A stretch of 44,469 nt of DNA. Source: Octopus bimaculoides (Eukaryota). The translations under genes were made by a program, and so were the position numbers. Each line of letters begins with the position of its first letter. The stretch's first letter is position 1. A model generated the notes under the pieces. It saw only the letters and a list, made by a program, of their open reading frames with translations. It made no database searches and had not been told where the DNA came from. The stretch covers positions 17,874,189 to 17,918,657 of the forward strand of contig NC_068990.1 in the NCBI RefSeq assembly GCF_001194135.2, given 5' to 3'. Positions 1 to 25,720 of the stretch are shown one piece after another.

Positions 1-540
1 AAAGGAAAGTATTAGAGGAGAAAAGGCTCTACTTACTGTTTTCTGGTGGGGTGGCTCCCCTATGTTTTCGTGTGGGTGTCTCCACTAAATTTTGATAAAG
101 GCTAATGGTTTCAAATTTTTGGCACAACGTAAAAAGCATCATCTGAACATGGCTGATGCCAGTACCCACTGACTGGTTCCCGTGCAGGTGGCACATAAAA
201 AGCACTATCCAGATGTGATCAATGGCAGGCCTGTCTGACCAACTCCTGTGCCGGTGGCACGTAAAAAGCATCCACTACAATTCATGTACTGGAGTCAATG
301 GTAGCAATTAACAATTTCCCATCAAAATTGCTAGCCTTATGCACACTAGTGTAGCTAGAGTGTTTGCCACCTGGAGTAGCCCTTCCGTTTGCTGCCCTTG
401 GACCCCACAAAAAACACACTGCCTACAGCAGACCCAAAAGCGGTGCCCCTCTAAAAGTGCTACCTGGGTCAGACTGCTCCTAAAACCCCCACCCCCTCCC
501 CAGCTACGCTAGTACTTGTGCCTAAATCAAAAACAGTTGA

Positions 541-1880
541 AGGTAGCAAGCTGGCAGAAATGTTAGTGTTGGAAGAATATGAAGGTCAATAAGATACCAG
601 TTAAGTTCTAGGGGCAATGTAATTGATTAACACCTCAACTTAAAATTGCTGGCCTTTTGCCAAAACTTTGAAACTATTAAGGCAGAGAACTGACAAAATC
701 ATTTGCACATTAGACAAAATGTTTAACAGCACAACCTCCTTACATTCAATGTTCAATTTCTGGTGAGGTCAACTTTACCTTTCACCCTTTTGTGATCAAT
801 AAAACAAAGGACCAGTCAAGTACTGGGATTGATGTGACCCACTAACTTTGTCTCCTTAAAATTTTTGGCCTTGTGTTAACATTTGAAACCATTATTATTA
901 TTGTTCAAATAGTACTTATTTTAGCAGGGTTGATAAAATAAATGTTAGTTGATTACTGGAGTTGAGGCAACTGACTAACCCGCAACTCCTGAAATTGCTG
1001 GTCTTGTACCAAAATTTAAAACAATTATTATTATTAATATCATTATTTATTTATGTTGTTGCTTTATTTAATGCAAGCTGTTCCAAATACCACCCAAGAA
1101 TCTCAAGTACCAACATGTCAGATATTTTGCTATGGATGTTATTCATGATTAATAATGGTATATTGTATGGGAGGGAGACCATAAACTGAAAACTAAGATT
1201 CTGTTAAATTTGTAATATTTCAGTTTCGAAAGAGTTTTAAAGGAATCAAATAGTTTCAAGTTGACAATATTTTTTCTTCGAATGTGGGCAGTACCCATGA
1301 GAACAATCTTTTGTAGTTCTGATACTTTTGAGTTTCCTGATATTTGGCTATATTGTTTAACAGCACCATTTGGTGATGTCTCCAAAGCTCTGATGATCAC
1401 AAGTACCGTTACTTTTCTAAGCTGTTGTTATTATTATTATTATAAAAGCAACGTGGCGAGCTGGCAGAATCATTAGCACACTGGATGAAATGCTTAGTGG
1501 TATTATGCCTGTTGCTACATTCTGAGTTCAAATTCTGCTGAGATTGACTTTGCCCTTTCAGGGGTAATATATTAAGTACCAAGGAAACACTGGGGTCAAT
1601 GTAATCAACTTACCCCCTCCCCAAAATCTCAAGCCTTGTGTCTAAAGTAGAAAGGATTATTATTATAAAAGCAGTGAAGTGGCAGAATCATAAGTGTAAC
1701 ACATGAAATGCTTAAATGCATTATTTCTGGCTCTTTATGTTCTGAGTTCAAATCCCACCAAGGTCAGGTTTGTCTTTCATCTTCTTGAGGTTGATAAAAT
1801 AATTACCATACCATTGTGGTCAATGTAATTGACTAGTCCACTCTCCCCAAGTTGCGTTTATAGTAGAACTTGTGCTTATA
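541..1880 (+). mobile_element. Cluster of five tandem copies of an (ATT)n-tailed tRNA-like SINE (family A), interrupted by a LINE fragment
   Basis: Repeated body GGTGGCGAGCTGGCAGAAT...TTCTGAGTTCAAATT (B-box-like)...TAAGTACC...GGCCTTGTG...ATTATT at about 541-678, 679-902, 903-1036, 1446-1665 and 1666-1880. Confidence 0.8.
1025..1425 (-). mobile_element. 5'-truncated R4/Dong-like LINE 3' end
   Basis: The peptide ELQKIVLMGTAHIRRK matches the C-terminus IQKIALLGTAHILRK of the element at 33.5 kb. Flanked by TAT runs on both sides. Confidence 0.75.
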
Positions 1881-1933
1881 GCAGAAAGAATTGTTATTTT
1901 TATTGCTATTTATTTATTATATTTTTCTTTTAG

Positions 1934-2055
1934 CCAACTTGTCCTGCTATGCTTGCTCCCACAAATACAGTCGAACAAGAAACACAAATTCCTGTGTGAC
2001 TCATTTGACAGATGACTTTATACAAAAATGTTCTGAAAATCAGAAATATTGTCAG
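1934..2055 (+). CDS. Ly6/uPAR (three-finger, quiver/sleepless-like) protein, internal coding exon
   Basis: Acceptor TTTCTTTTAG|CC (phase 1) and donor CAG|GTATG (phase 0). Encodes (A)NLSCYACSHKYSRTRNTNSCVTHLTDDFIQKCSENQKYCQ with the LU-domain start CxxC. Splices in frame to 3141. Confidence 0.88.
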
Positions 2056-2147
2056 GTATGTATGCACTGGGAGGACAAAGGTGAGAAGATTATGATTGTT
2101 TTTTGTTTTATTTGGGGGAAACAATCAGTAAGGAGAAAGAGTATATA

Positions 2148-2195
<48 letters not shown>

Positions 2196-2740
2196 AGTGG
2201 TAGGTAGGCTATCCCTGTAGGTGCAGTCTAGCCAAAGGTTTCAGTTGTCTGCTTTGCAACCCTGAGGTTTTGGGTTTGACCTCACTGCTTTGTGTCTTGA
2301 GCAAATGTCACTTTCTATAGCCTTGGGTTGACCCATACCTTGTGAGTGAAACTGGGTAAATGGAGATTGTATTGAAGCCCATAAGTTAGATTGTACTTTT
2401 AATTCAAAAAGAACAGCCTTATGCATTGTGTCATATTGATTCTGCTTGAGAATTATCCTTTAACGTACATATGTATGTGGAGTACTCAGCCACTTACATG
2501 TTAGTTCAGGAGCAGGTAATTATTCTCCACCCTTTTCCTACTGACTGTCCATGTAGATCAACTGTCCATTACCCTGTGTAACAAATTTTAATTTTCTTTT
2601 GTGTTTGGTCTGTAAGTATTATTTCATATTTGCTTCTATCTAGAAATCAAAGGAAATGACTACAATTCCCTTCAAACTTTGCTTTTGTGACTGGGATATC
2701 AATGCATTTCAGACAGATTCAGTACTGAGTTGCTGAAGCA

Positions 2741-2856
2741 GAATTTCCTGGAAGTTTCAAGAACTTCTGTGACGTTTCTAAAAGTTTCAAGAATTTCTAG
2801 AATGTTCTGGCAATATAAATGGCAGTATAAGGGATCATAAATTCAACAGTTCAGTT
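2741..2856 (+). promoter_or_regulatory. Heat-shock-element-like array plus TATA and Inr-like motif (possible solo LTR)
   Basis: Perfect GAAnnTTCnnGAA at 2751-2763 and TTCnnGAAnnTTC at 2795-2807, with imperfect units between. TATAAAT at 2814-2820 and TCAGTT at 2851-2856. Confidence 0.45.
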
Positions 2857-3140
2857 TACTTCTAGCTGTCCAAATGGAGATAAGTTTGAAGAAAGCAAAG
2901 TTTGAAGGAAATATTGTTCATTTTTCATACTTTCTAGGTATAAGCAAATAGGAAATAACAGTTGCTCCCTATGGACAAAAATTGTGTTACACAGTGTTTT
3001 ATTACTATTATGTCTATTCCACTCGTGCCTATCTCTATTCATTCCCCTTACCCCTAACTTCTTCACCTTTTACTTTTTCAGACATGCTACACCAGACAAC
3101 ATATCAAATTACTTTTCCATTTACACATTTTCTTTTGCAG

Positions 3141-3383
3141 GTGAAAGCTGTTTTAACCTATGGTGATGTGAAATCCATACAAAGAGGCTGTGTCACCAGT
3201 TGCAAAACTATTTGCAAGTATATCCTGTTTGGAATTAGCAAGAAGATTTGCACCAAATGCTGTGATAAATATTTATGCAATGATGATATAGCTTCCCATG
3301 CTGCAGCTATGGACCCTAAACTCATAGTTTTCCTCACTTATATAACCGCTATTATTATTACTACTGCGGTTATTCAACGGTGA
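3141..3383 (+). CDS. Ly6/uPAR protein, last coding exon with CC-x4-CN motif and GPI-type hydrophobic tail
   Basis: Acceptor TTTTCTTTTGCAG|GTG, phase 0. Encodes VKAVLTYGDVKSIQRGCVTSCKTICKYILFGISKKICTKCCDKYLCNDDIASHAAAMDPKLIVFLTYITAIIITTAVIQR*, with TGA at 3381-3383. Confidence 0.9.
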   Translation: MKAVLTYGDVKSIQRGCVTSCKTICKYILFGISKKICTKCCDKYLCNDDIASHAAAMDPKLIVFLTYITAIIITTAVIQR

Positions 3384-3854
3384 AATCGCGGTAAAAAATG
3401 GCAGACTTCCAGATTAAATATCTTACAGAATTTACTCTTGTCTTTCTTTGTTCTGAGATCAATCCCACTCTTTAGGGGTCAACTTTGCCTGTCCCCTCTC
3501 TCCAGAGCTTTTGTTGGTCCTAGCGCAACCCTGGTAAAGCAGAGATATTACCAAAAACAGTTCCAGCATTGACCATCTCTATTTTTTTTATCAGATGTAG
3601 TGTATCTAGGAGTACTTTAACCATTGTGTCTATTCATTTTTAAAATAGTAGGGTGTGATTTGAGGGAGATTTAGCTGCTATTTCTAGCAAATCAATCGAT
3701 TGCTTAGAGGATTTTTCATTTGTTATTTCTCCTCCAGGGTTGTTGTTGTTTAGCTTCAGCTCAAACTTGATAAAAAAAAAAAAAAGTAGGCCCATGATGA
3801 AAGGTGTTTCAACATTTACTCTCTCAGTGTTTTTTGTTTACAGATATCACTCAG

Positions 3855-4260
3855 GTATGGTTGTGTGGTTAAAAAGCTTACTTTGCAACCACTTTGTTTC
3901 AGGTTCAGTCCCACTGTGCAAGTGTCTTACTCCATAGCCTCAGACTGACCAACCCCTTGTGAGTGAATTTGGTTGAAGGAAACTGTGTGGAAGCCTGTTG
4001 TATGTATGTATGTATATGTAAGCATGTATGTGCATGTCTTTGTGTTTGTATTTGTCCCTCACACCTCTCACCACTTAACAACTGGCGTTGGTTTGTTTAT
4101 GTCCTGTATATTAGTGATTAGGCAAATGAGACTGATAGAATAAGTACCAAACTTTAAAACAAATAAGTACTGGGGTGGATTTGTTTGACTAAACCCTTCA
4201 AGGTGGTACCCCAGCATGGCCATAGTCCAGTGACTCAATCAAATCAGAAAATACATGATA
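3855..4260 (+). mobile_element. tRNA-derived SINE family C (CORE-like CCTTGGGCAAGTGTCTT segment, internal microsatellite)
   Basis: Head TGGTTGTGTGGT...GGTTCAGTCCCACT, then (TATG)n, then a 3' part ending CAGTCCAGTGACTCAA. Other copies at about 2215-2400, 7080-7300, 16675-16970(-), 19775-19865(-), 22290-22520(-), 30588-30705, 41215-41370(-) and 44240-44450(-). Confidence 0.8.
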
Positions 4261-5589
4261 ATACATATATAACTACCTTATTAATGTATCTTTGTCTTTT
4301 TAAGATGGTAGGGAGTGAATTGCAGGACATTTGGCTACTACTTCTAGCAGTTCAAGCAACCATATAGAGGCCTTTTCATCTGTTGATAAACTAGGTTATA
4401 TTATGACTTAATTGATTTATGTCATTGCCCTTTATACAACATATCTTATAACTTTGTATGACATCATTATTCTTCATTATGTGGTTGAGCATGATTAAAT
4501 ATAAATAAAAATAAGAACAAAAACTGTCAGTCATTTCTTTTTCCTCCTGCACCCCACAACTGGTTATTCTCACCTCTAATCCACTATTCACTACCTCCAC
4601 CCTCCAACCCTACCCAGGCTTTACAGTTGTTGCCTACCTCCCCTCCCGTCACCCATTCCTCATCTCTCACCCCCTCCATACATACCTGCAAACCCCCACC
4701 TACCCACACTCCTTGTTCCTCTCTCCCCACTTGATTCTACTCACTTCGTACCTTGAAGGTCCACAGAGACACCTCATCACTTCTATTTCTTATCTCTTTC
4801 CAGTTCCATCTGATCACACTCACCCTCTCTTCTCAAATGTGAGTAGTCATGTGGCCCTTCTACAGCAAGAAACCTGTTCTGCTCTGGCCTTTTCTCTCAT
4901 ACTTTAACCCCTCATTTTCTAGTATAAAGTCACCCCACTTTGAGGATTAGTCACGGAAGGTGCATGGTGACCTTAATAGTGCTGGTACCATGAAAAAAGC
5001 ACCAGCACATGCCGTGAGGTGGTTGACATTAGGAAGGGCATCCAGTGGTGGAAATCCTGCCAAGGGAGTACTGAAGTGCAATGCAGCTCTTGGACCCATT
5101 GGATCTTGTCAAACTGTCTAACCTATGCCAACATGGAGACTTAAAACAAAAAGATGATGACAATGGTGATGATGATGATGATGATTGAACGTTTACCTTA
5201 AAAACATTCCTTTAATAGTTTGCCTAAAAATGCCCCTTATCAAATTGTGATGAGATTAGGAGCATGTTGGACCTCATTGCTGTGCTAATTTATATGATTC
5301 ATAAAAACCATATCTTGTTGATGTTCAAGCAAACATCAATACTTTTCTAATATTATTATTCTCTTATTTTACTTTTTTTCAGTAAAAACAGAAATTTGGC
5401 ATAATCCAGCAATTCTTTATCTGAAGAAAAATTCCTTCTGGGGTTAAAATTTTCAAATTCTAAAGGAAAAATTGGTGATTCCAATGGGGATATTGTTTAG
5501 ATTGGAAAATTACTTATGATTATTCACAGTGTTTTTGCTACATTTATTTCCCCTTAATGTTGATTTTTTTTTTCATTAGGCCTATAATA

Positions 5590-6560
5590 TTAAATTAATA
5601 TCAGGTGAAACAAAGGTAATATATTTCAACAGAAATATTGTAATATAAAGGTTAAAATTAAAACTTTCATTCAAAGCTTTATGTTAATTTATGTTCCAAA
5701 TATCAGCTTAATAATTATTAAGATATTTTAACATGCTTCATTATTTTCAAAATGTATTGAAACAGAGGCAGTGTATTTCAACAGAAATTTGGCAATAAAA
5801 GAGTTAAAATGATCTAAATTAAAAATTTCAATCAAAACTTCATGCTAATTTATGTTCTGAATAAAGTGGCAAGCTGACAAAATCGTTAGCATGTTAGTAA
5901 AATGCTTAGCAGCGTTTCATCTGTCTTCTACATTTTGATTTAAATTCCACCAAGGTCCACTTTGCCTTTCGTCTTTTCAGGGTTAATAAAATAAGTACCA
6001 GTTGAACAATGGGGTTGATGTAATGAACCTGTCCCCTCCCCCAGAATTACTGGCCTTGTGCCAAAATTTGAAACCGATATTAATTTAAACGAAGGTAATG
6101 TATTTCAACAGAAATATGATAACAAAAGAGTTAAAATGATCTAAATTAAAACTTAACATCAAAATTTAATTTTGTTCTAAATAAGGAAGCAAGCAGGCAG
6201 AATTGTTAGCATGCTAGGCAAAATGCTTAGCAACATTTTGTTCATCTGTATGTTCTGAGTTCAAATTCTGCCGGAGTTTACTATGCTTTTCATCCTTTCA
6301 GAGTCAATCAAATAAATACTGATTGAACACTGTGGTTGATGTGATTGGCTTTCTCCCACCCACAAGATTACTGGCCTTGTGTCAAAATTTGACATCAATA
6401 TTAAATGAAACAAAAGCAAGGGTTAAAATGATCTAAATTAAAAATTTCCATCAAAACTTCATATTAACTCATGTTCTAAATATTAACTTAATAATGACAA
6501 AGATATTTCAATAAATTCTTCATTATTTTCAAAATTTATTGAAACAGATGCAATGAATTC
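5590..6560 (-). repeat. Tandem array of partial TTAA-type MITE units with two embedded family-A SINEs
   Basis: Recurrent GAAATATGATAACAAAAGAGTTAAAATGATCTAAATT units matching the 40329-40550 element. SINEs at about 5864-6081 and 6182-6401. Confidence 0.7.
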
Positions 6561-6785: not shown

Positions 6786-6914
6786 TTATTGCAGAGCATG
6801 TGTTAAGGTATTTATTAAGTAGTAAGTACCATTTCCACACTGGTTATCAAAGTCATCGAGTGCCATGTCCCATACTGCAAAGCCACCAAATGCATTTTCT
6901 TTCAACCACTGAGC
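6786..6914 (-). CDS. Chitinase last coding exon ([42 protein letters not shown])
   Basis: Acceptor TTTTTAG|GCT; 42 codons then TAA at 6788-6786. Hand-translated and absent from the ORF track. AATAAA overlaps the stop, and further AATAAA hexamers lie near 6627-6647. Confidence 0.92.
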   Translation of the reverse strand, partial: AQWLKENAFGGFAVWDMALDDFDNQCGNGTYYLINTLTHALQ

Positions 6915-7815
6915 CTAAAAATAAAAACACAATTTTGTTGAACAAAAAGAAAGCAAACAAACAAAAAACAACCCTCCTCAAATTACTGAGCAATGCAATT
7001 GACTAAAAATTCTCAGTCTAATGACTCAGTCTAATGGCCTCAGTCTAATGACTGAAATAAGTAAAAGATAAAAGATATGCATTTACGTATGTGTGTGTCT
7101 TCGGGTTTGTTCTCCTGTCACTTGAAAACCTGCGTTGGTTTGTTTATGTTCTTGTAACTTAATAGTTCAGTCAAAGAAACTGATAGAATAAGTACAGACC
7201 TGAGAGAAAAATATTGGGATCAATTTGCTTGATTAAATTCTTCAATGCAGTGCCCCTGCATGGCCAGAGTCCAATGTTTGAAACAAGTGAAAGAAGAAAA
7301 GAAGAAAAGAAATAAAAATATTTCTAAAAAATCCAATGGAAGACTCACTTTGATTGTTAAACTCTGGGCATCATCATAACCAATCCATTGGTCGTCCATG
7401 ACTAAATATGGCACCTTTTGTTCCTCAATCCAATATGTTTTGGCTCCACTCTTAATCATTTGGCAAATCTGAAAGAATTTCAGTAAAATCACTGTATGTT
7501 ACAATCATCATCATCATCATCATCATCGTTTAACGTCCGCTTTCCATGCTAGCATGGGTTGGACGATTTGACTGAGGACTGGTGAAACCGGATGGCAACA
7601 CCAGGCTCCAGTCTGATTTGGCAGAGTTTCTACAGCTGGATGCCCTTCCTAACGCCAACCACTCAGAGAGTGTAATATAATAAATAAATAAATAAATATA
7701 ATAAATAAAATTTTTCCTTTAATTCTAATAGTTATTTAGCATTTCAAAATTCTTGGCACACTCATACATTAATATTAATTTCATTATTGTCACCACCACC
7801 ACCACCACCACCTCT

Positions 7816-7862
<47 letters not shown>

Positions 7863-10800
7863 TGTCTTTCTTGTTTTCATGTTCAGTTTATCATGATTGA
7901 ATAGGTCGGATGGAATTTGTTGAGGTTAATTTTTCTATGGCCAGATGCTCTTCCTGTTGCTAATCCTCAACTGGTTCTAGGCAATGTTATATTGCCCCAT
8001 GACTAGACATGTTTTCACAGAAGACTGGAAACTAAAGACACTGCATGTATAACGGTAACACTCATTTACGACAAAGACACACACACATACACATGATTAA
8101 ACAGATTCCAAAGAGGTTGGCAAAATGATTTGTGAGTAGACTAAAAGTGTTGCCTGATTGTAAAATGGTGGAGGGTGCTTTTTAGGTTCCTGGTAATTTC
8201 TGACTGAGGAAACCTATGGATAAAGACATTCCTACAGGCATGTTTCTTGAGATAAAAGAATGTGATTCAAGGAAGGGAATTTAGTTGTTATTTCTAGCAG
8301 ATCACATGGCCTCATAGAAGTTTTCTTGCTGGTGATGCTGTAGAATTATATTGTGATGTGGTAGCGAGGGCCTGATAATCATCTGAGTAATAGCGTCACC
8401 ATTGAATACTTTCTGTCATCTATAAGATGTAGGGCTACACAGGTTGGCAGATACCCATGATTTTTCCAGCCAGGGCATATAATATAAAGATTCACCTTGT
8501 ATCTTGAAAACAAGCATGGAAAGCCAAAGAAGTATATGATGGGCACCCTTCAAAAGAAAAAAAAAAAAGCCAGCCCACTTGAATTTTGAGAGTACTCACA
8601 GCCCCATACCAGGCCCAAGAGCAACCTTCTACTTTGGACAATTTCTCTTGGAGGCCCTGCTCCCAGTTGACTGATACATACATGCATGTGCATACACATG
8701 CACACTGTCAATTTCTGGGTAGCAAAATACCATCATGAAGCTTTGGTTGTGGTATAAATCTGGAACCACATTGTTGCACATAATCATACTTGTACCCATA
8801 AATATTTTATCAGTGCTTAAATTTGTTTATATTGTTGATTATAAAAATATAGACTGCACTCAAAAGATATTTTATCTCTTTTATGTATTTCTGTTAACAA
8901 GTGTAATGAGGTACTCGACAAGGGAAGTAATTAATCTTAAATATTTCCATCTTCATCTACCTGACTTTTATATCATCATCTTTGACACTTCTTGTCCTCA
9001 CCTGGCAATCAAGTCCATTGCTTCCTTCAGCTGTGGCAAGGGTTTGGAGCTAAGCTGTCCGAACTTAGGATAAATGTACATGATATTTTATCATGCATAA
9101 CTCACATGATTTGTGAGTAGACTAAAAGTGTTGCCTGATTGTAAAATGGTGGGTGGGGTGCATTCTATGCCTTGACCCAAGCATAGAACAGGACTCACCT
9201 CTTTGAGCTAGGAAATGAATGGAGTACCTGGTGTGTGTCTTGTGGCTACCCACTCCTGAAAAAATGGGGAAAAGGCCTGGGTATATATATTATGTATTAT
9301 ATATATATATATTTATATAATATNNNNNNNNNNNNNNNNNNNNNNNNNNNNNNNNNNNNNNNNNNNNNNNNNNNNNNNNNNNNNNNNNNNNNNNNNNNNN
9401 NNNNNNNNNNNNNNNNNNNNNNNNNNNNNNNNNNNNNNNNNNNNNNNNNNNNNNNNNNNNNNNNNNNNNNNNNNNNNNNNNNNNNNNNNNNNNNNNNNNN
9501 NNNNNNNNNNNNNNNNNNNNNNNNNNNNNNNNNNNNNNNNNNNNNNNNNNNNNNNNNTTGTATGATTGTGTATAGAGGAATATATTATTTTGTTTAAAAG
9601 AGTTCCAGCACTGTCTGTTTTTTTATGTTTTATTTATATTCCTGCAAAACCAATGTAGGATATAGAATATGGAATATACAATATATAATATAATATACAA
9701 TATATAATATAAAATAAAAATGGATGGTACTATGAAATAAAGTATTGAATGTCTTATTGAATATATGGAATATGTCTTATTGAATATATGGAATATGTCT
9801 TATTGAATAGATGAAATATTGAGTGTTACACACACACACACACACATACGTACAGGTGTGTATGATTGTGCATAGAAGAATATATTACTCAAAGAAATTC
9901 CAACTTTGTACGTCTAAGTATTAGTATTACTTAGAGGTACTATTTTTACTGCTATGACTACTATCACTAACAACAACAATACTAAAGGTGCTCGTTATGA
10001 TGATAGCAGGAAAATACTATCTAAGTCAGTAAAAATTCTTATTTTGGGGTTTAAAGTTCTATTACCACAGCTGCTCCTACCACCACCATCACCAACAACA
10101 ACAATAAAGGAGATGGTAACGATGATGATGATAATGGAAATGTAAAAATCCTTGGGAAATGTTGTTTACAACATTTCTAAAAATAACCTAACAATTACTG
10201 CTTTGGCCAGGGTCAAAATACAGGTCTCTGGACATATTTAACAAACCATGACACCGAAACCAAATGCCAATCAACTTAAGTAATTTAGTAAAATCACACA
10301 CTAATTGGTCAGAATGCAGTTTGCAAAAATTAACATTCTGGAGCCTAAACAAATGTATTTAAGGTACATAGTTTAGCCATCTTGCCACAGTTGTAAATTG
10401 TAAAAAATAACTGTCACCACTACTACACGGACATGAACATTGTAGAGTTTAATACATGAAAGTACTAGTTCAACCAGAATGGACATTTAATATTCTATCA
10501 TTTCATTATATTATATTATATCATTATAAGATTGTAAATAAAATGTGAAGATCAGACTAAGTTGGAATTTCTTTGAGTAATATACACACACACACACACA
10601 CACATACATGTATACACATGTGTACACACATGCATACACACACACACGCATGCACATACAGGTATACACATGCCCATGCACACACACACGCACAACATTA
10701 TATGTTCATAAGGGACTAAAGTATTTTTCAATATTTGAATTGTGAAAATGAAAATAAAATCACTTAATTTGTATAGAAGAAAAGTAATAACAAATATTTC

Positions 10801-13800
10801 AAATTTGGCACAAGGCCAGCATTTTTAGGGGGTGGGGTTTAGCTGATTACATCAATCCCAGTACCTGACTGGTACTTTATTTTATTGGCCCCAAAAGGTT
10901 GAAAGGCAAAGTTAACCACAGTGGGATTTGAACTCAGAATGTTATGAGTCAAAAGAAATTTTGTTTTGCATTTTGCCTGATGTATTAATGATTTTGTCAG
11001 CAAAAATAATAAAAATAACATAATCTTACCTCATAGTATGACAAAAACCCTTCTAATCTGGTGTATCTACCAGCTGCATTGGGTCCAGATGAAGGACATC
11101 CTGGAGCAATGCAAGTTTTATTAGTCAATTTAAATCCTCGTCCATATACTGGAATACCAATGTTCAACTTTTCTTTGGGCAAACCATTTAGTACCCAGTA
11201 GTTAGCACTCCAGTTCTGTATGTTAAAGAACAAAATTGTATATCACATTGATTAATATCACTTTAATGATTACAGAAAATTTACTCATGTTTTGAAAAAT
11301 CAATTATTTAACAAATTAGTCTTGAATATTTCTCATCTGATATTTAGGAAACTGTTAGGAATTGGTATTGAGAAAGAGTTACGGATAAATAAAAAGAATG
11401 AGATATAGAGAATAAGATAGTTTTTAGGGATAATGGAGTTAATAGATTTATTTGAATCTTGGTCTGTCATGAGTTGAAGGACTCACAAAGTTGGAAATTA
11501 GCCTGATTTACATGGTGTATAAATGATTGAGACACAGTGCTGGATTAGCCATTAAGCAAAATAAGCACATGCTTAGGCATCAAGGGAAGGAGGGGCACCA
11601 CAGAAATGGTAAATGGTTTAAAGCACAAAAGAAATCACTTTAAACTTGCTAACATAATATTCAAGATGCCTTTATCTCTACTAAGTATATATGTAGATGT
11701 GTTACTTAAGATTAACTTTGAGGATCTGATCAAAGACTTTTGCAATTCAAAAAAGTAGGAAGAAACTTTTCTAATATAAATAAAGTGGAAGTATACAAAA
11801 ATAAACATTATTTTCCCTCTTACTGTTTTGTTTTGTTTTGAAAAATAAAAATTTATTTTACAGTTTGTTATTGTTTATATTTTGAATTAGATAATCTTTT
11901 ATGGGGCCACCAAAATCTTTTAAGTGCTTAGGGCTTCAATGGGTCTTAATCCAGCCCTGTTGAGACACAACACTCCCTGCTGAACAGGATGCTAGTTCAT
12001 CACAAGGTTAACTTCCCAGCTTCTACTGAGATTCATTTTTGCCAGCTGAGTGGATTGGAGCAATGTGAAATGAAGTGTTTTGCTCAAGAATATTATGCAT
12101 TGCTCAATCCAGAAATTGAAACCAAGATCTTATCAGAGGTAACTAATATGGAATGAAATATGGCAACTACTCTCTATTGTTGGAGGTAAATGGACACATC
12201 CAGTTTGTGTATGTATGTATGTATAAACATATAACATGACTAAAAGATGAGAAGTGAGAAAAAAAGCCTTTATACCATATTAAATGTTTTTGCTAATCCT
12301 TCTTCATCGCTCAGAGAGTACAGGGGACAGTTATGACCAAGCACTTTATCAAATGAACCACCATGGTAGTCATATGACATCAGATTGAAGAAATCTACAA
12401 CACTGTAAATTAAAAAGAGAAACTTCAGTGGAAATACTTTAGAATATATAACCATACACTCACACACACACACACACACAGTATAGAAATATTGTGCAAG
12501 AGGTACAGTCCACTGTCTGTCACAGAACTTACCACTTCATGCACAATTAGCCACTAACACTTAAATGCATTGACTGTGTCATCAGAAATATCCCATTTCT
12601 TCCAGTTTGTTTAAATTGTAGTTGTCACCATCACCACCACCACCACCAGCATCATAATTGCTGTCATCTTCTTCACCTTATTCTTTTAACGTGCATGTTT
12701 CATAGGGGCATGGATTGGTTGGTTGGTTGGACAGGATCCAGAAATGAATCTGATGAAAGTAGCATTAACTTGCTAGGTTCAGTTTCTTTTGACTGATCAA
12801 CAGACCAATTGAGTAAGCCTAACAATAATGAACCTATAACAATAACTGGAAACAGCTGTAAATCAAATTTACTATAATAAGGAAAACTATATAATGGCCA
12901 TTATTTATACCTTGTCTTGTATATCATTCTGTGTAAAAATAACTGGAGCACAACCACAAATTTACAATATAGAATGGTGAACTATAACCTCGGAGCTTAC
13001 CACAAGAAATTGTGGAGTTCTTTACTCATATAAACAATATTGTTAGCCTGGTGTACTAACAGAGAGCTTGATAATCCCTTGCTAATAACTCTGTTTTATA
13101 TATATATATATATATCATCATTTAAAATTCACTTTCCACGCTGAAATGGGTTGGATGGTTTGATAGGAGCTGGTTAGGCAGAAGACAGCACCAGGCTTCA
13201 GTATGCTTAAATATATATATGTATATATNNNNNNNNNNNNNNNNNNNNNNNNNNNNNNNNNNNNNNNNNNNNNNNNNNNNNNNNNNNNNNNNNNNNNNNN
13301 NNNNNNNNNNNNNNNNNNNNNNNNNNNNNNNNNNNNNNNNNNNNNNNNNNNNNNNNNNNNNNNNNNNNNNNNNNNNNNNNNNNNNNNNNNNNNNNNNNNN
13401 NNNNNNNNNNNNNNNNNNNNNNNNNNNNNNNNNNNNNNNNNNNNNNNNNNNNNNNNNNNNNNNNNNNNNNNNNNNNNNNNNNNNNNNNNNNNNNNNNNNN
13501 NNNNNNNNNNNNNNNNNNNNNNNNNNNNNNNNNNNNNNNNNNNNNNNNNNNNNNNNNNNNNNNNNNNNNNNNNNNNNNNNNNNNNNNNNNNNNNNNNNNN
13601 ACAGATATATACAGTATTATTAATTTTTACATAGAAAAGATTATTGGTCATCATCAGACTTCAAAGTCTGATGAAGACCAGTAAACTGAATCTTTGAAGT
13701 TTATGTTAACATTTTCTTAGAATAATTGATACATTTTATATCATTTAATAAGAGAGAGAGAGGGAGGGAGGGAGAGGGGAAGAATTTATGATATTGAAAA

Positions 13801-14506
13801 GGAAAAGGCACAAGCAAAATTAACTTATATATTTACATACATCTGTGTATGTAAACTGCAGTTTTAGTCATAAAGCACACACACACACTAATTTTACATA
13901 TATAATTGAAATTTATCAAATTTATAGAAAGACAAAGACAGGTGAAGGAACAACAAAGGATGACAGTGACAATATGTCTGGGCATACACTCAAGGTACGT
14001 GCAGAGTATTGGAAATAGTGTGAGGGTAAGTGAGACATGGTACTCTGACTCATTTGGGAGAGCAGTAACTTTGAATAGAATTGATTTGGGCTATGATGAA
14101 TATGTGCCACCCATATTGGCATAAAGAGCGAGTGTAAAATAATAATGGTGATGATAATGATGATGATGGAGAAGGTGGTGATGTTAATGGTATCATCCTT
14201 TCCAATGAAGCAAAAAATGTATTCTATACCTGCATCAGACTGGTAAACTTTTCCTTGTCTTCAGGTGGACTGCCCCTGCTAGCTGGATATTCCCAGTCCA
14301 TATCTAGACCATCAAAACCTCTGGTTCGGAGGAAGTCTGTGGCATTGGTGTAGAACTGTTTTCTGTTTTCTGGGGTTGATGCCATTTGAGTGAACAGTGC
14401 AGAACCCATATTCCAGCCTCCAACAGACAAAAGTACAACCAGCTTGGGGTTCTTCTGCTTCATAGCAACCACTTTTGCATACCTTAAAAATATATATATA
14501 ATATAT

Positions 14507-14558
<52 letters not shown>

Positions 14559-17500
14559 CATAGAACATAAAATAAGGAAAGATATGAAGAAGCTACAGAA
14601 AAGTCAGGTAAGGAAAATAACAGAATGATATGAGGCACTAGAGTTTAGGTGGTTTGACAGGAGCTGACAAACCAGAGAGCTTCACCAGGCTCCAATTGTC
14701 TGTTTTGGTTTGGTTTCTATGGCTAGATGCCCTTCCTATTGCCAACCACTTTACAGGATGTACTGGGTGCTTTTTATGTCACACCAGCACCATTGCTTTT
14801 TATGTGGCACTGGCACAGGTGCTTTTTACATGGCACCAGGGTGGGTGATTTTTGTGTGGTACATGCATAGGTGCATTTTACATGGCACTGACATGGGTGC
14901 ACATTATGTGACACTGGCGCGAGTGCTTTTTATGTGGCACCATCGTGGGTGCTTTTTATGTGGCACCAGCACTTATGCTTTCTTCAAATGAAACCACATC
15001 CAGTTGTGCTTCTCTTTATAGTAAAATGAGATAACCTAATAAAATATGATACATTACTGTATTGAAATATCTTATAAAACCTATACCAATGTTCCTAAGC
15101 ATGGAAAAAGAAAAACATGAATTATTCTATGGTATAATCCAGTATATAGTCTAAATGTCTATATCTATAATGCTAATGACTTCTTAAATGTAATTTCTTT
15201 CTGATTTTCGATATATCATAGATATCATTCTTTTTAATCTAGATTCATTTAAGGTAAATGTTTCATGCAAAACTTGTCACCTTCACTAATAATTTGAATT
15301 TAGAAATTTATCTAGCAGTGTATTATCTGAACAAGTTGTCTACTTAATTTAACTGTCTATTGAAATCTGTAATCTAATGCATTAACATCCAAATCAGTAG
15401 TAACGTTGCTCCACAGCACTTCTATCATCCTGACAAAGAACTGCTTTAAAACAAGTTTTTATGAACATAGCCATACATTTAAGAAATCTGGAAAGAAATT
15501 TATCACAGGATTATCTAAACATGCCTATTAAAAAAACATATTGATGGCATTTAAAACCCAATAGCTAATCCTCAGTTATGTTATACTTTATGCAAGTGAT
15601 CATTTTCATTCAAATCTGTGCTGAAAGTTTTGTTTAGATGATAAATTATTGATACTATATTGATTTCAAATTTTGGCACAAGGCCAGCAAGTTCGGAGGA
15701 GGAGGTAAGTCGATTAAATAAGTACTCAATTAGTACTTATTTTATTGACCCTGAAAGGATGGAAGGCAAAGTTGAACTCAGAACTCAGATACACAAATAC
15801 ACACATAAAACTTGTGTTATCCTTGGTCTAAAACGACCGAATATGCCAGCATATAAGATGCTCTTTTTTTATTCGTAAATGTAACAAAAATTTAGTCATG
15901 CATCTAATGTAACCATATTATGAATTCTATACCATGTGTATGTTGAAACATATCAAATTTGTTTTTTCCACAAAACATACGTGTAAAGTAGGGGTGCATC
16001 TTATGCAAGAATGTGTTTTATACATAGGCAGATGTGATACATCTATCAATATATCTATATTTTTGTCTGTCTGTCTGTCTGTCTGTCTATCTGTCTATCT
16101 ATCTATCTATCTATCTATCTGTCTGTCTCCCTATACATACATACATACATATACACACACACATACACATACACACATACATCATGCATGCACATGTGCA
16201 TGCTCACACACAATTTTTTAATTAATAGAACTACTTTTGAATAGGAACAATACGATTTTTAGCAATATAAAAGATTTTATCATAGTAAATTAACAGAATA
16301 TTTTTGAAAAACCAGCTGAGATGAGGTATAGATTCCAAAATGTAAGATACACATAAACTAATAATATAAAGCATCTAGTCTGGTACTTAACTATACATGA
16401 ATACTTGCTGCCTGTTCCCTTGCGTTGTAATTAATAACAGCAGATTAACTTGAGTCACTAAATAAATATTCTAAACTTGTATAATTAAGTAAGGAAACTA
16501 GGACAGAGAGAGAGTGTGGAAAACAATTTTATGTGTGTATATGTTAATGCATGTACATATATATGTATGTGTGTATGTGTATATATATGTGTGTGTCTGT
16601 GTGTATGTGTTGTGTGTGTGTATGTATGTGTGTATGTATGTGTGTATATATATATATACTTTTACTCTTTTAGTTGTTTCAGTCATTTGACTGTGGCCAT
16701 GCTGGAGCACCACCTTGTAAACCTGGTATTGATTCTATCGATCTTTTTTGCTGAACTGCTAAGTTACAGGGACATAAACACACCAACATTGGTTGTCANN
16801 NNNNNNNNTCAGTTTCTGTCTACCAAATCTACTCACAAGGCTTTGGTCGGCCCAAGGTTATAGTAGAAGACACTTGCCCAAAGTGCTACGCAGTAGGACT
16901 GAACCCAGAACTATGTGGTTGGGAAGCAAGCTTCTTACCACACAGCCACACCTGCACCTCAATCATATCGAAATCAAAATGGAAATTGCAGTTGTGGCCA
17001 ATGCCAGCGTGCGTATGTGTGTGTGTCTTTATTTCAGCAAGATCTATAGAGTGACACAAAAGTTGAGTTTCCGGCATACCTATGAGTCACTCTGTAATTG
17101 CTACTAATGAAAGTATAAAAATATTTATAATGAATACATACTAATGTTTTGAGTTCTATTTTTCATGTTTGTATTACCACACCTATCATTATCATCATTT
17201 AACATCCGCTTTCCATGCTAGCATGGGTTGGACGATTTGACAGGGGACTGGCGAACCAGATGGCTACACCAGACTCCAATCTGATCTGGCAGAGTTTCTA
17301 CAGCTGGATGCCCTTCCTAATGCCAACCACTCTGAGAATGNNNNNNNNNNAGTTTCTACAGCTGGATGCCCTTCCTAATGCCAACCACTCTGAGAATGTA
17401 GTGGGTGCTTTCTACATGCCACCGACATGAGGGCCAGTCCGGCGGTACTGACAATGGCCATGCTCAAATGGTGACTTTTACGTGCCACCTGCACAGGAGT

Positions 17501-20500
17501 CAGTCCAATGTATTGTTCACATGCCACCAGCATGAGTGCCAGTAAGGTGAAGCTGGAAACGATCACGCTCAAACGGTGCTTTTTACGTGCCACTGGCATG
17601 GAAGTGAGACCGCTGCTCTGGATGGTGCTGTTAGTGCTCCACTGGCACAAATCCCAGTCATCAAATTTGGTTCAGTTTCAATCTCACATGCCCCAACAGG
17701 TCTTCGCAAGCTGAGTTTAGTGTCCAATGAAGGAAGGTTGGCATGGGTGCCAGTCAACGAATTTGGTTCAATTTTCGATTTCAATTTCACTTGCTTCAAC
17801 AGGTCTTCACAAGCAGGGTTTTGTGTCCAAAGAAGGAAAGGAACCTATATACATACATAATTACATACATACATACATGCATATGCATGCAGACATAAAG
17901 AGATGCCAAGAGTGAAAAGGAAAGTAAGATATAGACAGACAGATAGAAACTGAGAGGTGGGGAAAGAGATAGTATGAGTGAGAGAAATTTGTAGAGTCTC
18001 CTCAAAAGGTGAACTAAGCCCTCTTAAAACAACACACCACCTACTGACAATGACAGTTGGATAATACAAACACAAAACAAACAGAAACGCAGACGGGTGT
18101 TTGACACAATTTTCTTAATTATACACTCATTATACAATATCAAATTAAATTGGTGTCAGTGATGGATCAACCACGTGCTTGCTCAAATTGCTAGAAATGA
18201 CAGCCTAATCTCTTTCAGATTACACTCTACCATCTTGAGGAAATGAGTCAAAATACATTGCATGAGTTTAGTTCTAGAAAAACCGTGTTTGAGTAAAAAG
18301 AAGAAAAAATGGTTTGTTATGCTTGGAATGTCTTCATTATAGAAGCAGAGTACTTTGGCCAAGGGGAAATATTACCTTGCTTAGAAACAGGTGAGGATTG
18401 GTGAAAGGAAAGGGTTTCCAGCCATTGGAAATCTGCCCCAACAAATTCTAAATAACCCATGCAAGCATGGAAAAGTGAATGTTAAGAAAATGATGATGAT
18501 GATGAGCTTTCAAGTCGAGATGAAGCATCATCATCGTCATTGTCATCATCATTTACTATTCTTCTTCCATGCTGGTATGGATTGAACAGTCTGACGGAAT
18601 TTGATGTGCCCAAGGACTGCATCCTGCTCCAGTGTATGTCTTGGCATGGTTTCTATGGCTGGATGCTCTTCCTAATCCCAAGCACTTTACAGTATAAACT
18701 ACTGGGTGCTTTTTTGTGATACCAGCACTAGTTACATCATTGTATAGCTTGCAAGACTATGAGTCTTGAGGGTGTAACTCTATGTCAGAGGAGGGATAAA
18801 AGTATGAGAGAAGGGGTCAGAGCAGAACCAGTTTCTTACTGTGGAGGAACTACATAACTATTGACATTTTAGAAGAGACATTGGGAGTGATCATAGTGCA
18901 GTTAGTAAGAGATAAGAATGGTGGTGATGAGGTGTCTGGATGGCCCTTCTACAAGGTGGGTAGAAGAGAGTGGGGAGAGAGGAGTTAGAAACATGCATGT
19001 GTGGTGGGGTAGAGATTGCAAGAGTGTATGGAGAAGTGAGAGGTAAGGAATGAGTGAGAGGATCAGTGGTATGCAACAAGTGTAAAGATTGAATAGGGCT
19101 GAATGGTGTATGTTGTGAATGGTGGATAAGGGGTGAGGGATGACCAAGAATGTTTCTTAATATGTAATCGTTTCTACTTTGGCACAAAATCTAAATTTTG
19201 GGTGAGGGGCCTCAGCCTCAGTGCTCAATGGTACTTATTTGGTTGGCCCTGAAAGAAGGAAAAGTAAAGTCAACTGCAGCAGAATTTGAACTCAGAACAT
19301 AAAAATGGACAAAATGTCACTAAGCATTTTTGTCTGGCATGCTAAAGATTCTGCCAGCTCAATACCAATGGATCAAACAGATTAATGTAGAATTAGTTTA
19401 TCACTAAAGTACTGAAGTGTATAGAAGTGAAATATAAAAAGAAACAAAGAACCGGTACTCAAATTCACTTGTATCGTATTCTACCTACATGCCAACCATC
19501 CATGGTGTTGAATCATCATTCCACTCAAAAGGTTTAAGGTAGTTGCCCTCCAGGGTAGCGAATGCATAAATGATGTGGGTACATAATTGAGGATCAATAT
19601 TTTCAGGCAGAAACTTGGCTGGTACTTCTCTGTACTGACTCCAGTTGGTGTAATAGCAGACTCGGCGAAAGCTCTGGTTGGCATCTGAAATATATAGAAG
19701 CATTTAAATATTTAATGATTGCGTGATATAAATGTGAAAACTTATTGTATTATAAATATGTTCACAAATAGCAAAATAGCACAGGCACACAGTACCACAC
19801 AAAGGGACTGAACCTGGAACCATGTGGTTGGGAAGCAAACTTCTTACTGCACAATCACACCTGTGCCTAATATATATATATATATAATAATCGATGACTC
19901 GGCAGCAAGGGGGAAGCCAACTAACACCTATTAAGGCTATAAATTCTGAAATGTACCCCTCCCTTTGTGTCATGGTGTTGCTCCCCTCCCATTGTACCAC
20001 TTGAATGTAGGAGCATTCCGTCGCTTACGACGACGAGGGTCCCAGCTGATACGATCAACGGAACAGCCTGCTCATGAAATTAATGTGCAAGTGACTGAGC
20101 AATCTACAGACACGTGTACCCTTAACGCCTTAACGTAGTTCTCAGGGAGACTCAGCGTGAAACATAGCGTGACAAGGCTGGCCCTTTGAAATGCAAGTAC
20201 TACTCATTTTTCTGCCAGCTGAGTGGTCTGGAGCAACGGGAAATAAAGTGTTTGCTCAAGGACACAACACGTTGCCGGGAATCGAAATCACGACCTTACG
20301 ATTGTGAGCCGAATGCCCTAACCACTAAGCCATGCACCTTCACTCACTTGAATGTACATTGTTTTTGGTTAAGCTCATTCTACGGTAAGAATCAATTGTA
20401 GAGTCACTAAATATATATGTGCCCTGAATTTTAAATTATTTTAGATGTCAATGGCTGTAATGAATTGACACCTGTCCCCCAATTGTTACTTATTTATTTG

Positions 20501-20776: not shown

Positions 20777-22590
20777 TGTATGTATGTATGTATATATGTA
20801 TCTATCTATCTATCTATCTATCTATATATTTATCATAAATATACAGGGATTAGCATTGAGTTGCTTCTCCAACATACTGAAAATTTAGAAATAGCAGTCA
20901 AAGAACTACTGATTCTAAACTACAAATTTTTCTTTAAACGGATGGCAATATTTATGGCACACATAGAACAAAAAACCGGAGGGAAAAGCATAAACAAAAC
21001 AAGTCTTTAGTTATCTATTATTAATTGACGATTCTATAATAATTCTATTATTAATTGACGATTCCCTGCCCTTATTCTTGTATATCTATATATTTATATA
21101 TTTAATCCTTTATATTGAACACTCAATATTTCATCTATTCAATAAGACACTCAATACTTTATTTCATAGTACCATCCATTNNNNNNNNNNNNNNNNNNNN
21201 NNNNNNNNNNNNNNNNNNNNNNNNNNNNNNNNNNNNNNNNNNNNNNNNNNNNNNNNNNNNNNNNNNNNNNNNNNNNNNNNNNNNNNNNNNNNNNNNNNNN
21301 NNNNNNNNNNNNNNNNNNNNNNNNNNNNNNNNNNNNNNNNNNNNNNNNNNNNNNNNNNNNNNNNNNNNNNNNNNNNNNNNNNNNNNNNNNNNNNNNNNNN
21401 NNNNNNNNNNNNNNNNNNNNNNNNNNNNNNNNNNNNNNNNNNNNNNNNNNNNNACACACACACATACATATGTATCAGAATTCTTCATTTCTATCCGAGA
21501 TAAACGACCAGGTAATTGAGATGTATATTGCCTTCACAGTGTTTACCGTTTTACAAAATCAAACTAGAAAACTGGACAAAAAAGAGAACCCAATTGAAAA
21601 AATTAAAAAGAAAAAAAAACAAAAAGAGAGAAAGAATGGCAGGCTCCCTGACTCCACAGGCCTCTATGGCCTTTCTTGCCACCTGAATGTTGGTCATTCC
21701 GCACATCATATGGAGTTGAACCTGATACTCAAGAGGAGCTTGGCCTGGGCAAACAACTCCTCCATCTTGGAACCATCTGGATTGTCCAGATGTGATGGCA
21801 AGAGATCTGATGGCCTCACCCTCTTTCCCTGGTTGCAAGGTAGATGCCTTGTCTGGGATGTCACAGTTAGCGGCTCCTTTGCTTCTTCTCACATCCTGGA
21901 TGCTGCGGTCAGAACAAGATCCACAGCTTCTACAGCTGAGAGAAACAAAATCCTGAAATACCATGATCTGTCAGCCAATTATATTTTCCATCTTGTGGCG
22001 TTCAAGATGTTTGGTGGGGTTGGACCACTTACTGCAAGATTCCTGTCTTCACTGGTAACTCACCTTGCAGAGGTAACTGATGAGGCTCGTGAGGGCACTT
22101 GGCTGTTCCAGTGCATCAGCCTTGCCATCACTCACGGCAATGCTGCAAGCATGCTGATGTGTCTCAATAGCCATTAGAAAGGTTTCCCATCAACCCTAAC
22201 TTTTCAATCCAAGGTGGTGAATTGTTTTTTCCTTTTTTCTCTTTCTTCTTTCTCTCTCTTTTTTTTTATATCAGAATATAAAAAAAGTTGGCGAACTGCT
22301 ACGTTATGGGGATGTAATCAAACCAACATTTGTCGTCAAGAGATGGTGGGGGGACAAACACAGACACACACACACACACAAACATGAAGGGCTTCTTTCA
22401 GTTTCCGTCTACCAAATCCACTCACAAGGTTTTGATTGGTCTGAGGCTATAATAGAAGACACTTGCCCAAAGTGCCACACAGTGGGACGGAACCCGGAAC
22501 CATGTGGTTGGGAAGCATATATATATACATACATACATATATATACATATATAATTAAAAGGGTAAGCAAATGTTTGCTGATCCCTTAAT

Positions 22591-22625
<35 letters not shown>

Positions 22626-23046
22626 NNNNNNNNNNNNNNNNNNNNNNNNNNNNNNNNNNNNNNNNNNNNNNNNNNNNNNNNNNNNNNNNNNNNNNNNNNN
22701 NNNNNNNNNNNNNNNNNNNNNNNNNNNNNNNNNNNNNNNNNNNNNNNNNNNNTCTCTCCTTCAATACCCCACTAACATCTCAAAGGATCTTTGTCTTGCA
22801 AGTTACTTGGTGACTTCACCAGTCCTGGAGCCAGGTAGAAAGCATCCAGTCTACTCTATAAAGTGGTTGGGGTTAAGAAAGGCATCCAGCCATACAAAGA
22901 CCATGCCAAAACAGACAATGGAGCCTGGTGCAGTCCTATGGTTAGCCAGCTCTTGTCAATCTGATCGACCCATGTCAGTGTAGAAAGTAGACATTAAATG
23001 ATGATGATGATGATGATGGTGATGGTGGTGGTGGTGGTGGTGGTGG

Positions 23047-24853: not shown

Positions 24854-25720
24854 NNNNNNNNNNNNNNNNNNNNNNNNNNNNNNNNNNNNNNNNNNNNNNN
24901 NNNNNNNNNNNNNNNNNNNNNNNNNNNNNNNNNNNNNNNNNNNNNNNNNNNNNNNNNNNNNNNNNNNNNNNNNNNNNNNNNNNNNNNNNNNNNNNNNNNN
25001 NNNNNNNNNNNNNNNNNNNNNNNNNNNNNNNNNNNNNNNNNNNNNNNNNNNNNNNNNNNNNNNNNNNNNNNNNNNNNNNNNNNNNNNNNNNNNNNNNNNN
25101 NNNNNNNNNNNNNNNNNNNNNNNNNNNNNNNNNNNNNNNNNNNNNNNNNNNNNNNNNNNNNNNNNNNNNNNNNNNNNNNNNNNNNNNNNNNNNNNNNNNN
25201 NNNNNNNNNNNNNNNNNNNNNNNNNNNNNNNNNNNNNNNNNNNNNNNNNNNNNNNNNNNNNNNNNNNNNNNNNNNNNNNNNNNNNNNNNNNNNNNNNNNN
25301 NNNNNNNNNNNNNNNNNNNNNNNNNNNNNNNNNNNNNNNNNNNNNNNNNNNNNNNNNNNNNNNNNNNNNNNNNNNNNNNNNNNNNNNNNNNNNNNNNNNN
25401 NNNNNNNNNNNNNNNNNNNNNNNNNNNNNNNNNNNNNNNNNNNNNNNNNNNNNNNNNNNNNNNNNNNNNNNNNNNNNNNNNNNNNNNNNNNNNNNNNNNN
25501 NNNNNNNNNNNNNNNNNNNNNNNNNNNNNNNNNNNNNNNNNNNNNNNNNNNNNNNNNNNNNNNNNNNNNNNNNNNNNNNNNNNNNNNNNNNNNNNNNNNN
25601 NNNNNNNNNNNNNNNNNNNNNNNNNNNNNNNNNNNNNNNNNNNNNNNNNNNNNNNNNNNNNNNNNNNNNNNNNNNNNNNNNNNNNNNNNNNNNNNNNNNN
25701 NNNNNNNNNNNNNNNNNNNN

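Follow-up and report, generated by a model that had tools for sequence, protein, structure and literature searches.

The question raised by a 44,469-nucleotide (nt) stretch of Octopus bimaculoides DNA (contig NC_068990.1, positions 17,874,189 to 17,918,657 of the forward strand; hereafter the window) is whether two short open reading frames (ORFs) near its start are spliced to encode a small, basic, three-finger protein of the Ly6 (LU) type and, if so, what such a protein may do. A reading made earlier from the sequence alone (the original prediction) had proposed that positions 1934-3383 encode an unannotated 12-Cys LU protein with a glycosylphosphatidylinositol (GPI)-type C-terminus, either a modulator of acetylcholine-receptor-like channels or a member of a toxin-precursor lineage. 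By computational analysis, positions 1934-3383 were found to hold the second and third of the three coding exons of a gene, LOC106883984. It specifies a 145-residue precursor in which an N-terminal signal peptide is followed by one 12-Cys LU domain, a short linker and a hydrophobic C-terminal tail. We consider it nearly certain that this is a real gene with an LU fold.

Splicing of positions 1934-2055 to 3141-3383 on the plus strand was found to generate a 120-residue open frame, NLSCYACSHKYSRTRNTNSCVTHLTDDFIQKCSENQKYCQVKAVLTYGDVKSIQRGCVTSCKTICKYILFGISKKICTKCCDKYLCNDDIASHAAAMDPKLIVFLTYITAIIITTAVIQR, closed by a stop codon and preceded by 2 nt that complete a codon. The splice junctions were canonical (acceptor ttttcttttag/CC, donor CAG/gtatgt and acceptor tcttttgcag/GT), and the product was 100% identical to residues 26-145 of XP_014790630.1, a 145-residue O. 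bimaculoides entry named "uncharacterized protein LOC106883984" with an empty precomputed Pfam field. The gene was thus unannotated with regard to domain and function, as had been claimed, but not with regard to its model, which is already public; the domain and function label is the missing part. LOC106883984 sits on chromosome CM046610.1 (GCA_001194135.2), which matched the window exactly at all sampled positions, and gene models are present in RefSeq/GenBank for three Octopus species, all of which use the 2055/3141 junction, whose sequence is conserved. Neither plain ORF (1891-2148 or 2982-3383) contained the whole LU domain, in agreement with the original prediction. The phase-1 signal exon that this prediction had placed upstream was also found, not in a search of the 44 kilobase (kb) window but approximately 22.1 kb upstream of window position 1 (position 32217 of the extended locus L001) and thus 24,076 nt, or approximately 24.1 kb, before exon 2.

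Features of LOC106883984 are given below in window coordinates, except for exon 1, which is given in coordinates of L001.
L001:10001-10073, outside the window: signal-peptide exon 1; 73 nt encoding MRPVRLWITFLAVILYHVVVHCSN plus G, with a gtaagt donor in phase 1 (exact peptide match).
1-1933, plus strand: 3' end of intron 1 (full intron 24,076 nt); the polypyrimidine tract and acceptor AG finish at 1933.
1934-2055, plus strand: coding exon 2, 122 nt; encodes N26-Q65 after completing codon A25 with its first 2 nt, and includes the predicted cleavage site (SNA/NLS), Cys1-Cys5 (C29, C32, C45, C57 and C64), loop I and the start of loop II.
2056-3140, plus strand: intron 2; 1085 nt, GT..AG, phase 0, between Q65 and V66, one residue past Cys5.
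3141-3281, plus strand: first part of coding exon 3; V66-N112, the remaining LU domain with loops II and III and Cys6-Cys12 (C82, C86, C90, C102, C105, C106 and C111).
3282-3383, plus strand: C-terminal GPI-type propeptide, D113-R145, assigned by hydropathy; stop codon TGA at 3381-3383.
3294-3296 and 3300-3308, plus strand: candidate omega sites S117 and A119-A121, respectively, assigned by sequence rules.
3384-4510, plus strand: presumed 3' untranslated region, with candidate poly(A) signals ATTAAA at 3413 and AATAAA at 4494 and 4504 (pattern scan).

In a typical LU gene, a signal exon that ends in phase 1 is followed by a pair of exons for the LU domain, and the last exon also carries the GPI signal (PMC4839075, PMC6600238). 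The octopus gene was found to fit this layout of three coding exons, with a phase-1 signal exon, an LU domain split over exons 2 and 3, and a GPI-type signal in exon 3. Its internal intron interrupts the domain where loop II begins, one residue past Cys5, compared to the loop-II tip described in the review literature (PMC4839075, PMC6600238). A (GA)n microsatellite is located inside intron 2 at approximately 2153-2192.

The spliced product displayed the Cys spacing C-2-C-12-C-11-C-6-C-17-C-3-C-3-C-11-C-2-CC-4-CN, an exact match to that predicted, and its 84-residue domain (from the first Cys to the terminal CN) carried 14 K/R against 5 D/E as had been counted, for a net charge of +9 and an isoelectric point of 9.05. 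The basic residues are concentrated in the loops, of which loops I and II have 3 each and loop III has 4; loop I contains a basic KYSRTR stretch, and loop III a hydrophobic tip, YILFGI, with lysines on both sides. All ten plesiotypic LU cysteines were found (C29, C32, C45, C57, C64, C82, C86, C105, C106 and C111) and aligned with those of LYPD6, PSCA and SLURP-1, and the domain closes with the motif CCDKYLCN at residues 105-112. Disulfides of the LU superfamily pair cysteines 1-5, 2-3, 4-6, 7-8 and 9-10 (PMC6600238). By homology with LYPD6, six disulfides would form in the octopus protein: C29-C64, C32-C45, C57-C82, C86-C105, C106-C111 and an extra loop-III pair, C90-C102.

The CN is followed by DDIASHAAAMDPK, then by an 18-residue hydrophobic stretch (L126-I143, positions 3321-3374) and a terminal QR. 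Small residues (A116, S117 and A119-A121) precede a spacer, MDPK, and this hydrophobic tail, an arrangement that had been noted in the original prediction. The elements identified by eye and hydropathy (SNA/N cleavage, S117/A119-121, MDPK, L126-I143 and QR) were common to most relatives of the protein described below, and by these features GPI anchoring is judged probable.

Although superfamily membership was apparent from the Cys framework, Pfam models recognized it poorly. Toxin_TOLIP (PF00087) was the best match of the octopus LU domain (19.9 bits, E=0.0013, with a full-length alignment over 1-72/72), just under its cut-off. The QVR and UPAR_LY6 models, proposed earlier as the search to make, gave no match to the octopus protein by hmmscan (QVR was absent even at E<=10), and UPAR_LY6_2 (PF16975, the Pfam model of LYPD6) reached only E=0.21 and 12.2 bits compared to a cut-off of 31.5 bits. 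When relatives of the protein were compared to Pfam at E<=0.01, matches were detected to Toxin_TOLIP (26/52), QVR (11/52), UPAR_LY6 (7/52), CD59 (6/52) and UPAR_LY6_2 (5/52). Single-sequence phmmer against PDB chains likewise returned insignificant matches only (a knottin at E=0.31 and LYPD6 at E=7.4), and a family profile was therefore needed. This profile matched LYPD6 at 1.5e-6 with 12/12 Cys aligned, followed by PSCA (6.9e-6), SLURP-1 (1.5e-4), Lynx1 (1.8e-3) and then snake toxins. Since the Pfam matches are weak, assignment to the superfamily rests on the predicted fold and the family profile, together with the arrangement of the Cys and of the exons.

The fold was modelled with AlphaFold2 from the family alignment, with a predicted local distance difference test (pLDDT) score of 89.2, a predicted template modelling (pTM) score of 0.70, the expected strands and a short loop-I helix. 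By Foldseek comparison to the PDB, the matches listed (top 50) were LU proteins, three-finger toxins and TGF-beta/activin/BMP-type receptor ectodomains, all three-finger. Those named among them include Lynx1 (2l03, template modelling score 0.73, the top match), GPIHBP1, C4.4A, LYPD6B, LYPD6, Lynx2, PSCA and uPAR; for LYPD6 (6gbi), the root-mean-square deviation was 3.6 A over 96 columns at ~21% identity. The product of LOC106883984 is thus predicted to adopt the three-finger fold, as originally proposed.

These comparisons also bear on whether the protein may act like CD59, as a protector of its own membrane against pore-forming proteins of the complement/MACPF type. Among human three-finger proteins, CD59 is the structure most similar to LYPD6/6B (PMC7582953), and a probably GPI-anchored single LU domain together with weak CD59 Pfam matches in 6 of the 52 relatives would be in keeping with such a role. 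The octopus protein itself, however, had no CD59 Pfam match, CD59 was not among the top 50 Foldseek matches listed, and no contextual evidence was found, so a CD59-like function is considered very unlikely.

To place the protein among animals, an exhaustive HMMER search of 1.84 billion representative proteins was performed at E<=1e-3. By this approach, 71 proteins were detected (best E=4e-12), most of 120-170 residues. The 12-Cys framework was present in 69 of the 79 proteins fetched, most of which had a C-terminal extension of 25-45 residues with a hydrophobic end. In an alignment of 52 sequences, 9 Cys were invariant, and C90, C102, C105, L27, R80 and N112 were conserved in >=90% of sequences. 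Across the six frames of the window, the CC-x(3-6)-C[ND] motif occurred once; this sole occurrence, the 100% protein identity and the relatives detected to E=4e-12 indicate that the pattern did not arise by chance.

Named molluscan members of the family include the gastropods Lymnaea, Patella and Biomphalaria, a chiton and a bivalve. Also named are bryozoans, the brachiopod Lingula, a nemertean and the annelids Capitella and Owenia, with further members in decapod crustaceans, a horseshoe crab ('LYPD6B-like'), the nematode Trichuris and amphioxus. Nearly all labels were placeholders or automatic ('uncharacterized', 'hypothetical', 'Snake toxin/toxin-like domain-containing', 'prostate stem cell antigen'), and the source databases provided no functional description on any member retrieved. 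Word-indexed searches returned only the protein's own cluster when the spliced protein was used as query and mostly decapod crustacean proteins, with no additional cephalopods, when the family alignment was used. A moth protein, P0008 (Mythimna separata, 833 residues), matched the query over 10 separate stretches and, based on these, appears to be a multi-LU-domain protein, unusual beside the single-domain family.

A paralogue was detected in Octopus, LOC106873633 (chromosome CM046606.1; L004:10001-24867), with 30% identity by BLASTP, the same three exons, identical intron positions and phases, and an LU charge of +8. A homeobox gene lies ~8 kb downstream of this paralogue on the opposite strand. 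Over 69 relatives, the net charge of the LU domain spanned -11 to +11 (median +1), such that LOC106883984 (+9) and its paralogue (+8) are near the top. The phase-0 intron that follows Cys5 was found at an identical position in the window gene (YCQ/VK), the paralogue (YCQ/VK), Lingula (YCK/VE) and amphioxus (YCM/IE), the latter two examined at loci of Lingula anatina (L006) and Branchiostoma belcheri (L005). The amphioxus gene has one extra intron directly before a CTSCC motif. From the homology with LYPD6, we infer that LOC106883984 is a member of an ancient clade of 12-Cys LU proteins that is widespread among bilaterians and as yet uncharacterized; vertebrate LYPD6/LYPD6B would be the nearest relative of this clade with a known characterization.

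The breadth of this clade across protostomes is what a housekeeping cell-biological role would predict and would suit a function in epithelial or glial junctions, similar to Drosophila Boudin, Coiled, Crooked and Crimpled in the assembly of septate junctions and paracellular barriers. Much of the characterized biology of invertebrate (Drosophila) Ly6 proteins is of this type, and the weak QVR matches in 11 of the 52 members point in the same direction. By contrast, the Drosophila Ly6 proteins have a framework of 10 Cys and not 12, the octopus protein is without a QVR match, and among the named family matches there was no insect single-domain orthologue, the sole named insect protein being the multi-domain protein of the moth. 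A junctional role is therefore regarded as unlikely, although it is the strongest of the rival functions considered here.

Conservation of the gene was examined between Octopus species. The three-exon layout, bounded by canonical splice sites, recurs in the orthologues of O. vulgaris (CAI9729328.1) and O. sinensis (XP_029641092.1), whose introns are of ~25-26 kb and 1.7 kb. Between species, 19 of 438 coding nt were found to differ (95.7% identity of the coding sequence), compared to the lower identity of 84-91% for alignable intron and flank sequence. Within the LU domain (residues 29-112), 2 codon changes were nonsynonymous (K56T and S98R) and 4 synonymous; in the signal peptide and tail, 10 were nonsynonymous and 1 synonymous. 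The LU domain is, by these counts, under purifying selection between Octopus species, and the divergence of signal and tail is ordinary evolution of hydrophobic ends. The O. vulgaris orthologue is as basic, K56T being balanced by S98R with no net change. The sole N-glycosylation sequon, N26-L-S (window positions 1936-1944), is missing from O. vulgaris/O. sinensis (N26S), as is a 13th Cys, C22 of the signal peptide (C22S), which is encoded upstream of the window in exon 1, and it is unlikely that either has functional weight.

A first intron as long as 24 kb and a gene model of computational origin could indicate a gene-prediction artefact or an unexpressed pseudogene. This explanation is highly improbable when compared to the intact frame and canonical splice sites in three Octopus genomes, the greater conservation of exons than of introns, the retention of 12/12 Cys, R80 and N112, and the intron position common to other phyla.

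The same data bear on the suggestion that the protein is a toxin or toxin precursor secreted in octopus venom or saliva. The predicted three-finger fold and strongly basic charge would suit a toxin, and the lysine-flanked hydrophobic tip of loop III recalls cobra cytotoxins. GH18 chitinases are reported from cephalopod salivary glands, and a neighbour gene of the GH18 type (described below) was counted on the same side. However, the protein continues for 33 residues past the CN in a GPI-type extension, with no stop right there, and only 2 of the 84 LU residues separate O. bimaculoides from O. vulgaris/sinensis, silent changes exceeding replacements, unlike the diversification typical of toxins. 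In addition, the locus is single-copy, with no second LU gene or tandem array found when the six frames of the window were searched by motif, and the same architecture is present in non-venomous animals of many phyla. A toxin lineage, the second option of the original prediction, is thus disfavoured by the GPI-type tail, the purifying selection and the old, widespread family, and we give it hardly any weight. As the main explanation it was rejected based on the GPI tail and the between-species conservation.

The reading we prefer is that LOC106883984 encodes a cis-acting, GPI-anchored accessory of a receptor or channel, to which we assign a probability of about 0.55. According to this model, the signal peptide would be cut after A25 (SNA/N) and a GPI anchor would replace the C-terminal tail around S117-A121, which would leave ~92-96 residues as a basic (+9) domain tethered to the outer leaflet of the plasma membrane. 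Through its three loops, the domain may then contact the ectodomain of a receptor or channel within that membrane and tune the trafficking or gating of this partner. The role is proposed by analogy with Lynx1/2, LYPD6, Ly6H, Sleepless and Lystar5. LYPD6, Lynx1 and Lynx2 act on nicotinic acetylcholine receptors (nAChRs) (PMC7582953). A partner of the nAChR (nicotinic Cys-loop) type would be the single likeliest class, although this choice is tentative, at odds well short of even. That the chemotactile receptors specifically are the partner would be a long shot.

Several points weigh against this reading. Partners of LU proteins are very diverse, including LPL, uPA, complement C8/C9, LRP6, K+ channels and septate-junction components, and therefore the fold does not identify the target; no nAChR-like gene was found in the window. 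The octopus protein alone reached no Pfam gathering score (for Toxin_TOLIP, 19.9 compared to 21.2 bits), and the full-length precursor matched no Pfam family at E<=0.01. The disulfide map is borrowed from LYPD6 and not observed, and GPI anchoring is read by rule of thumb from the putative signal; the hydrophobic end could in principle be a transmembrane helix with a 2-residue cytoplasmic tail. An exact-protein look-up for transcript-derived contigs returned genome assemblies only, and a literature search on the LOC and XP identifiers and on cephalopod Ly6 proteins found nothing that mentions the locus.

The present result is a correct, ordinary gene identification. It assigns a domain and an architecture (a signal peptide, then a 12-Cys LU domain and a GPI signal) to an 'uncharacterized' Octopus gene and its orthologues, and it places this gene in a conserved 12-Cys LU clade of many protostome phyla and amphioxus with an intron position in common. 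If any member of the clade modulates nicotinic-type receptors, the clade would be the obvious group in which to seek endogenous regulators of the large receptor expansions of cephalopods. A bolder and very improbable proposal is that the basic pair, LOC106883984 (+9) and LOC106873633 (+8), are cephalopod-specialised GPI-tethered accessory subunits that would tune the expanded nicotinic-like receptors, including the chemotactile receptors of the sucker; if true, this pair would be the first endogenous 'prototoxin' partner of the sucker chemotactile sensory system.

The remainder of the window contains a convergent downstream neighbour of the GH18 chitinase-like type (465-residue product) that extends on the minus strand from ~6786 to 19703 and beyond. 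The exon at 14224-14568 encodes the DxxDxDxE catalytic motif and, since the catalytic Glu is present, the enzyme is probably active. One ORF of the retroelement debris matched zf-RVT, a reverse-transcriptase zinc-binding region (E=6.7e-5); the remaining debris ORFs had no match to Pfam and the look of transposon fragments. Short interspersed repeats were found to match several places in the O. vulgaris locus. Many of the eleven runs of N (assembly gaps) are bordered by (TA/CA)n-type simple repeats, and the content of the gaps is invisible. These features are as follows.
7220-7492, 10997-11233, 14224-14568 and 19485-19703, minus strand: exon-like ORFs of the GH18 gene.
33491-34110, minus strand: retroelement debris.
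21470-22177, 23513-24115 and 28242-28448, plus strand: retroelement debris.
~1447-1612 and 1705-1832: short interspersed repeats of ~150-170 nt, in intron 1.
5863-6024 and 6189-6345: short interspersed repeats of ~150-170 nt, downstream of LOC106883984.
9324-9557, 13229-13600, 21181-21453, 22626-22752 and 24854-25720: runs of N.
28453-28996, 29907-30483, 34114-34738 and 42858-43705: runs of N.
16799 and 17341: two runs of N of 10 nt each.

Of the known systems, vertebrate LYPD6, together with LYPD6B (6gbi, 6ib6 and 6zso), is the closest relative of solved structure, in which a single GPI-anchored LU domain carries the same order of 12 Cys. LYPD6/LYPD6B have four core disulfides plus one each in loop I and loop III (PMC7582953). 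The extra loop-I and loop-III disulfides would be common to the octopus protein, with C90/C102 aligned to LYPD6 Cys61/Cys72, as are the pattern C-x-C-x-C-x-C-x2-CC-x4-CN and the terminal CN; a short helix in loop I, as in LYPD6, is predicted in the octopus model, and in the PDB it was LYPD6 that the family profile matched best. Differences were also evident. The loop-II Asn-Ser-Ile motif by which LYPD6 binds LRP6 (PMC7582953) is replaced by D74-V75-K76 in the octopus protein (GDVKSI compared to GNSISV), the family consensus has no Asn there, and the net charge is opposite, +9 compared to -4 for LYPD6 (PMC7582953). The octopus LU domain begins 3 residues past the predicted cleavage site, and that of LYPD6 at residue 47 of the precursor. 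When human LYPD6 was compared to the fetched set by phmmer, the horseshoe-crab protein was the only close match (7.5e-16), with the octopus protein at E=0.05.

These comparisons bear on whether the protein may be an orthologue that acts as LYPD6 does, binding LRP6 as a raft-resident GPI protein and boosting Wnt/beta-catenin signalling. LYPD6 is the best solved-structure match with 12 Cys aligned, including the loop-III pair, and the UniRef label LYPD6 on one bryozoan member and LYPD6B-like on the horseshoe-crab member lend this idea some support. Against it are the absence of the NxI motif, the PF16975 score, the marginal phmmer match and the opposite charge reported above, and PSCA nearly equals LYPD6 in family-profile score. 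A Wnt-related role is thus quite improbable. LYPD6 orthology as a firm call was rejected, since neither the NxI motif nor a match to PF16975 was found. By its sequence, the octopus protein is best described as a member of a 12-Cys, LYPD6-like LU clade and not as LYPD6.

The prototoxins Lynx1, Lynx2 (LYPD1) and Ly6H are GPI-anchored single LU domains, as is predicted for the octopus protein, and these prototoxins are the model for cis-modulation of nAChRs. Lynx1 is only marginally similar in sequence (profile E=1.8e-3) and has 10 Cys compared to 12; Lynx2 also has the fifth and sixth disulfides (PMC7582953). Quiver/Sleepless, the insect Ly6 proteins of PF17064, provide an invertebrate example of a GPI-anchored LU domain, and some members of the octopus family match QVR weakly; the octopus protein differs in having no QVR match and 12 rather than 10 Cys. 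Shaker-type K+ channels and nAChRs are reported as interaction partners of Sleepless (PMC4735452). Snake three-finger toxins have the fold, core disulfides and basic charge in common with the octopus protein but are secreted, lack a GPI signal, have 8-10 Cys and evolve fast in tandem arrays, whereas the octopus gene is single-copy and conserved with a GPI-type tail. Finally, Lystar5 of starfish, a three-finger protein related to the Lynx2/LYPD6 group, was shown to be a negative modulator of nAChRs in tests on vertebrate receptors only (PMC9410279). Although from a different phylum than the octopus protein, Lystar5 is a precedent outside vertebrates for the mechanism proposed here.

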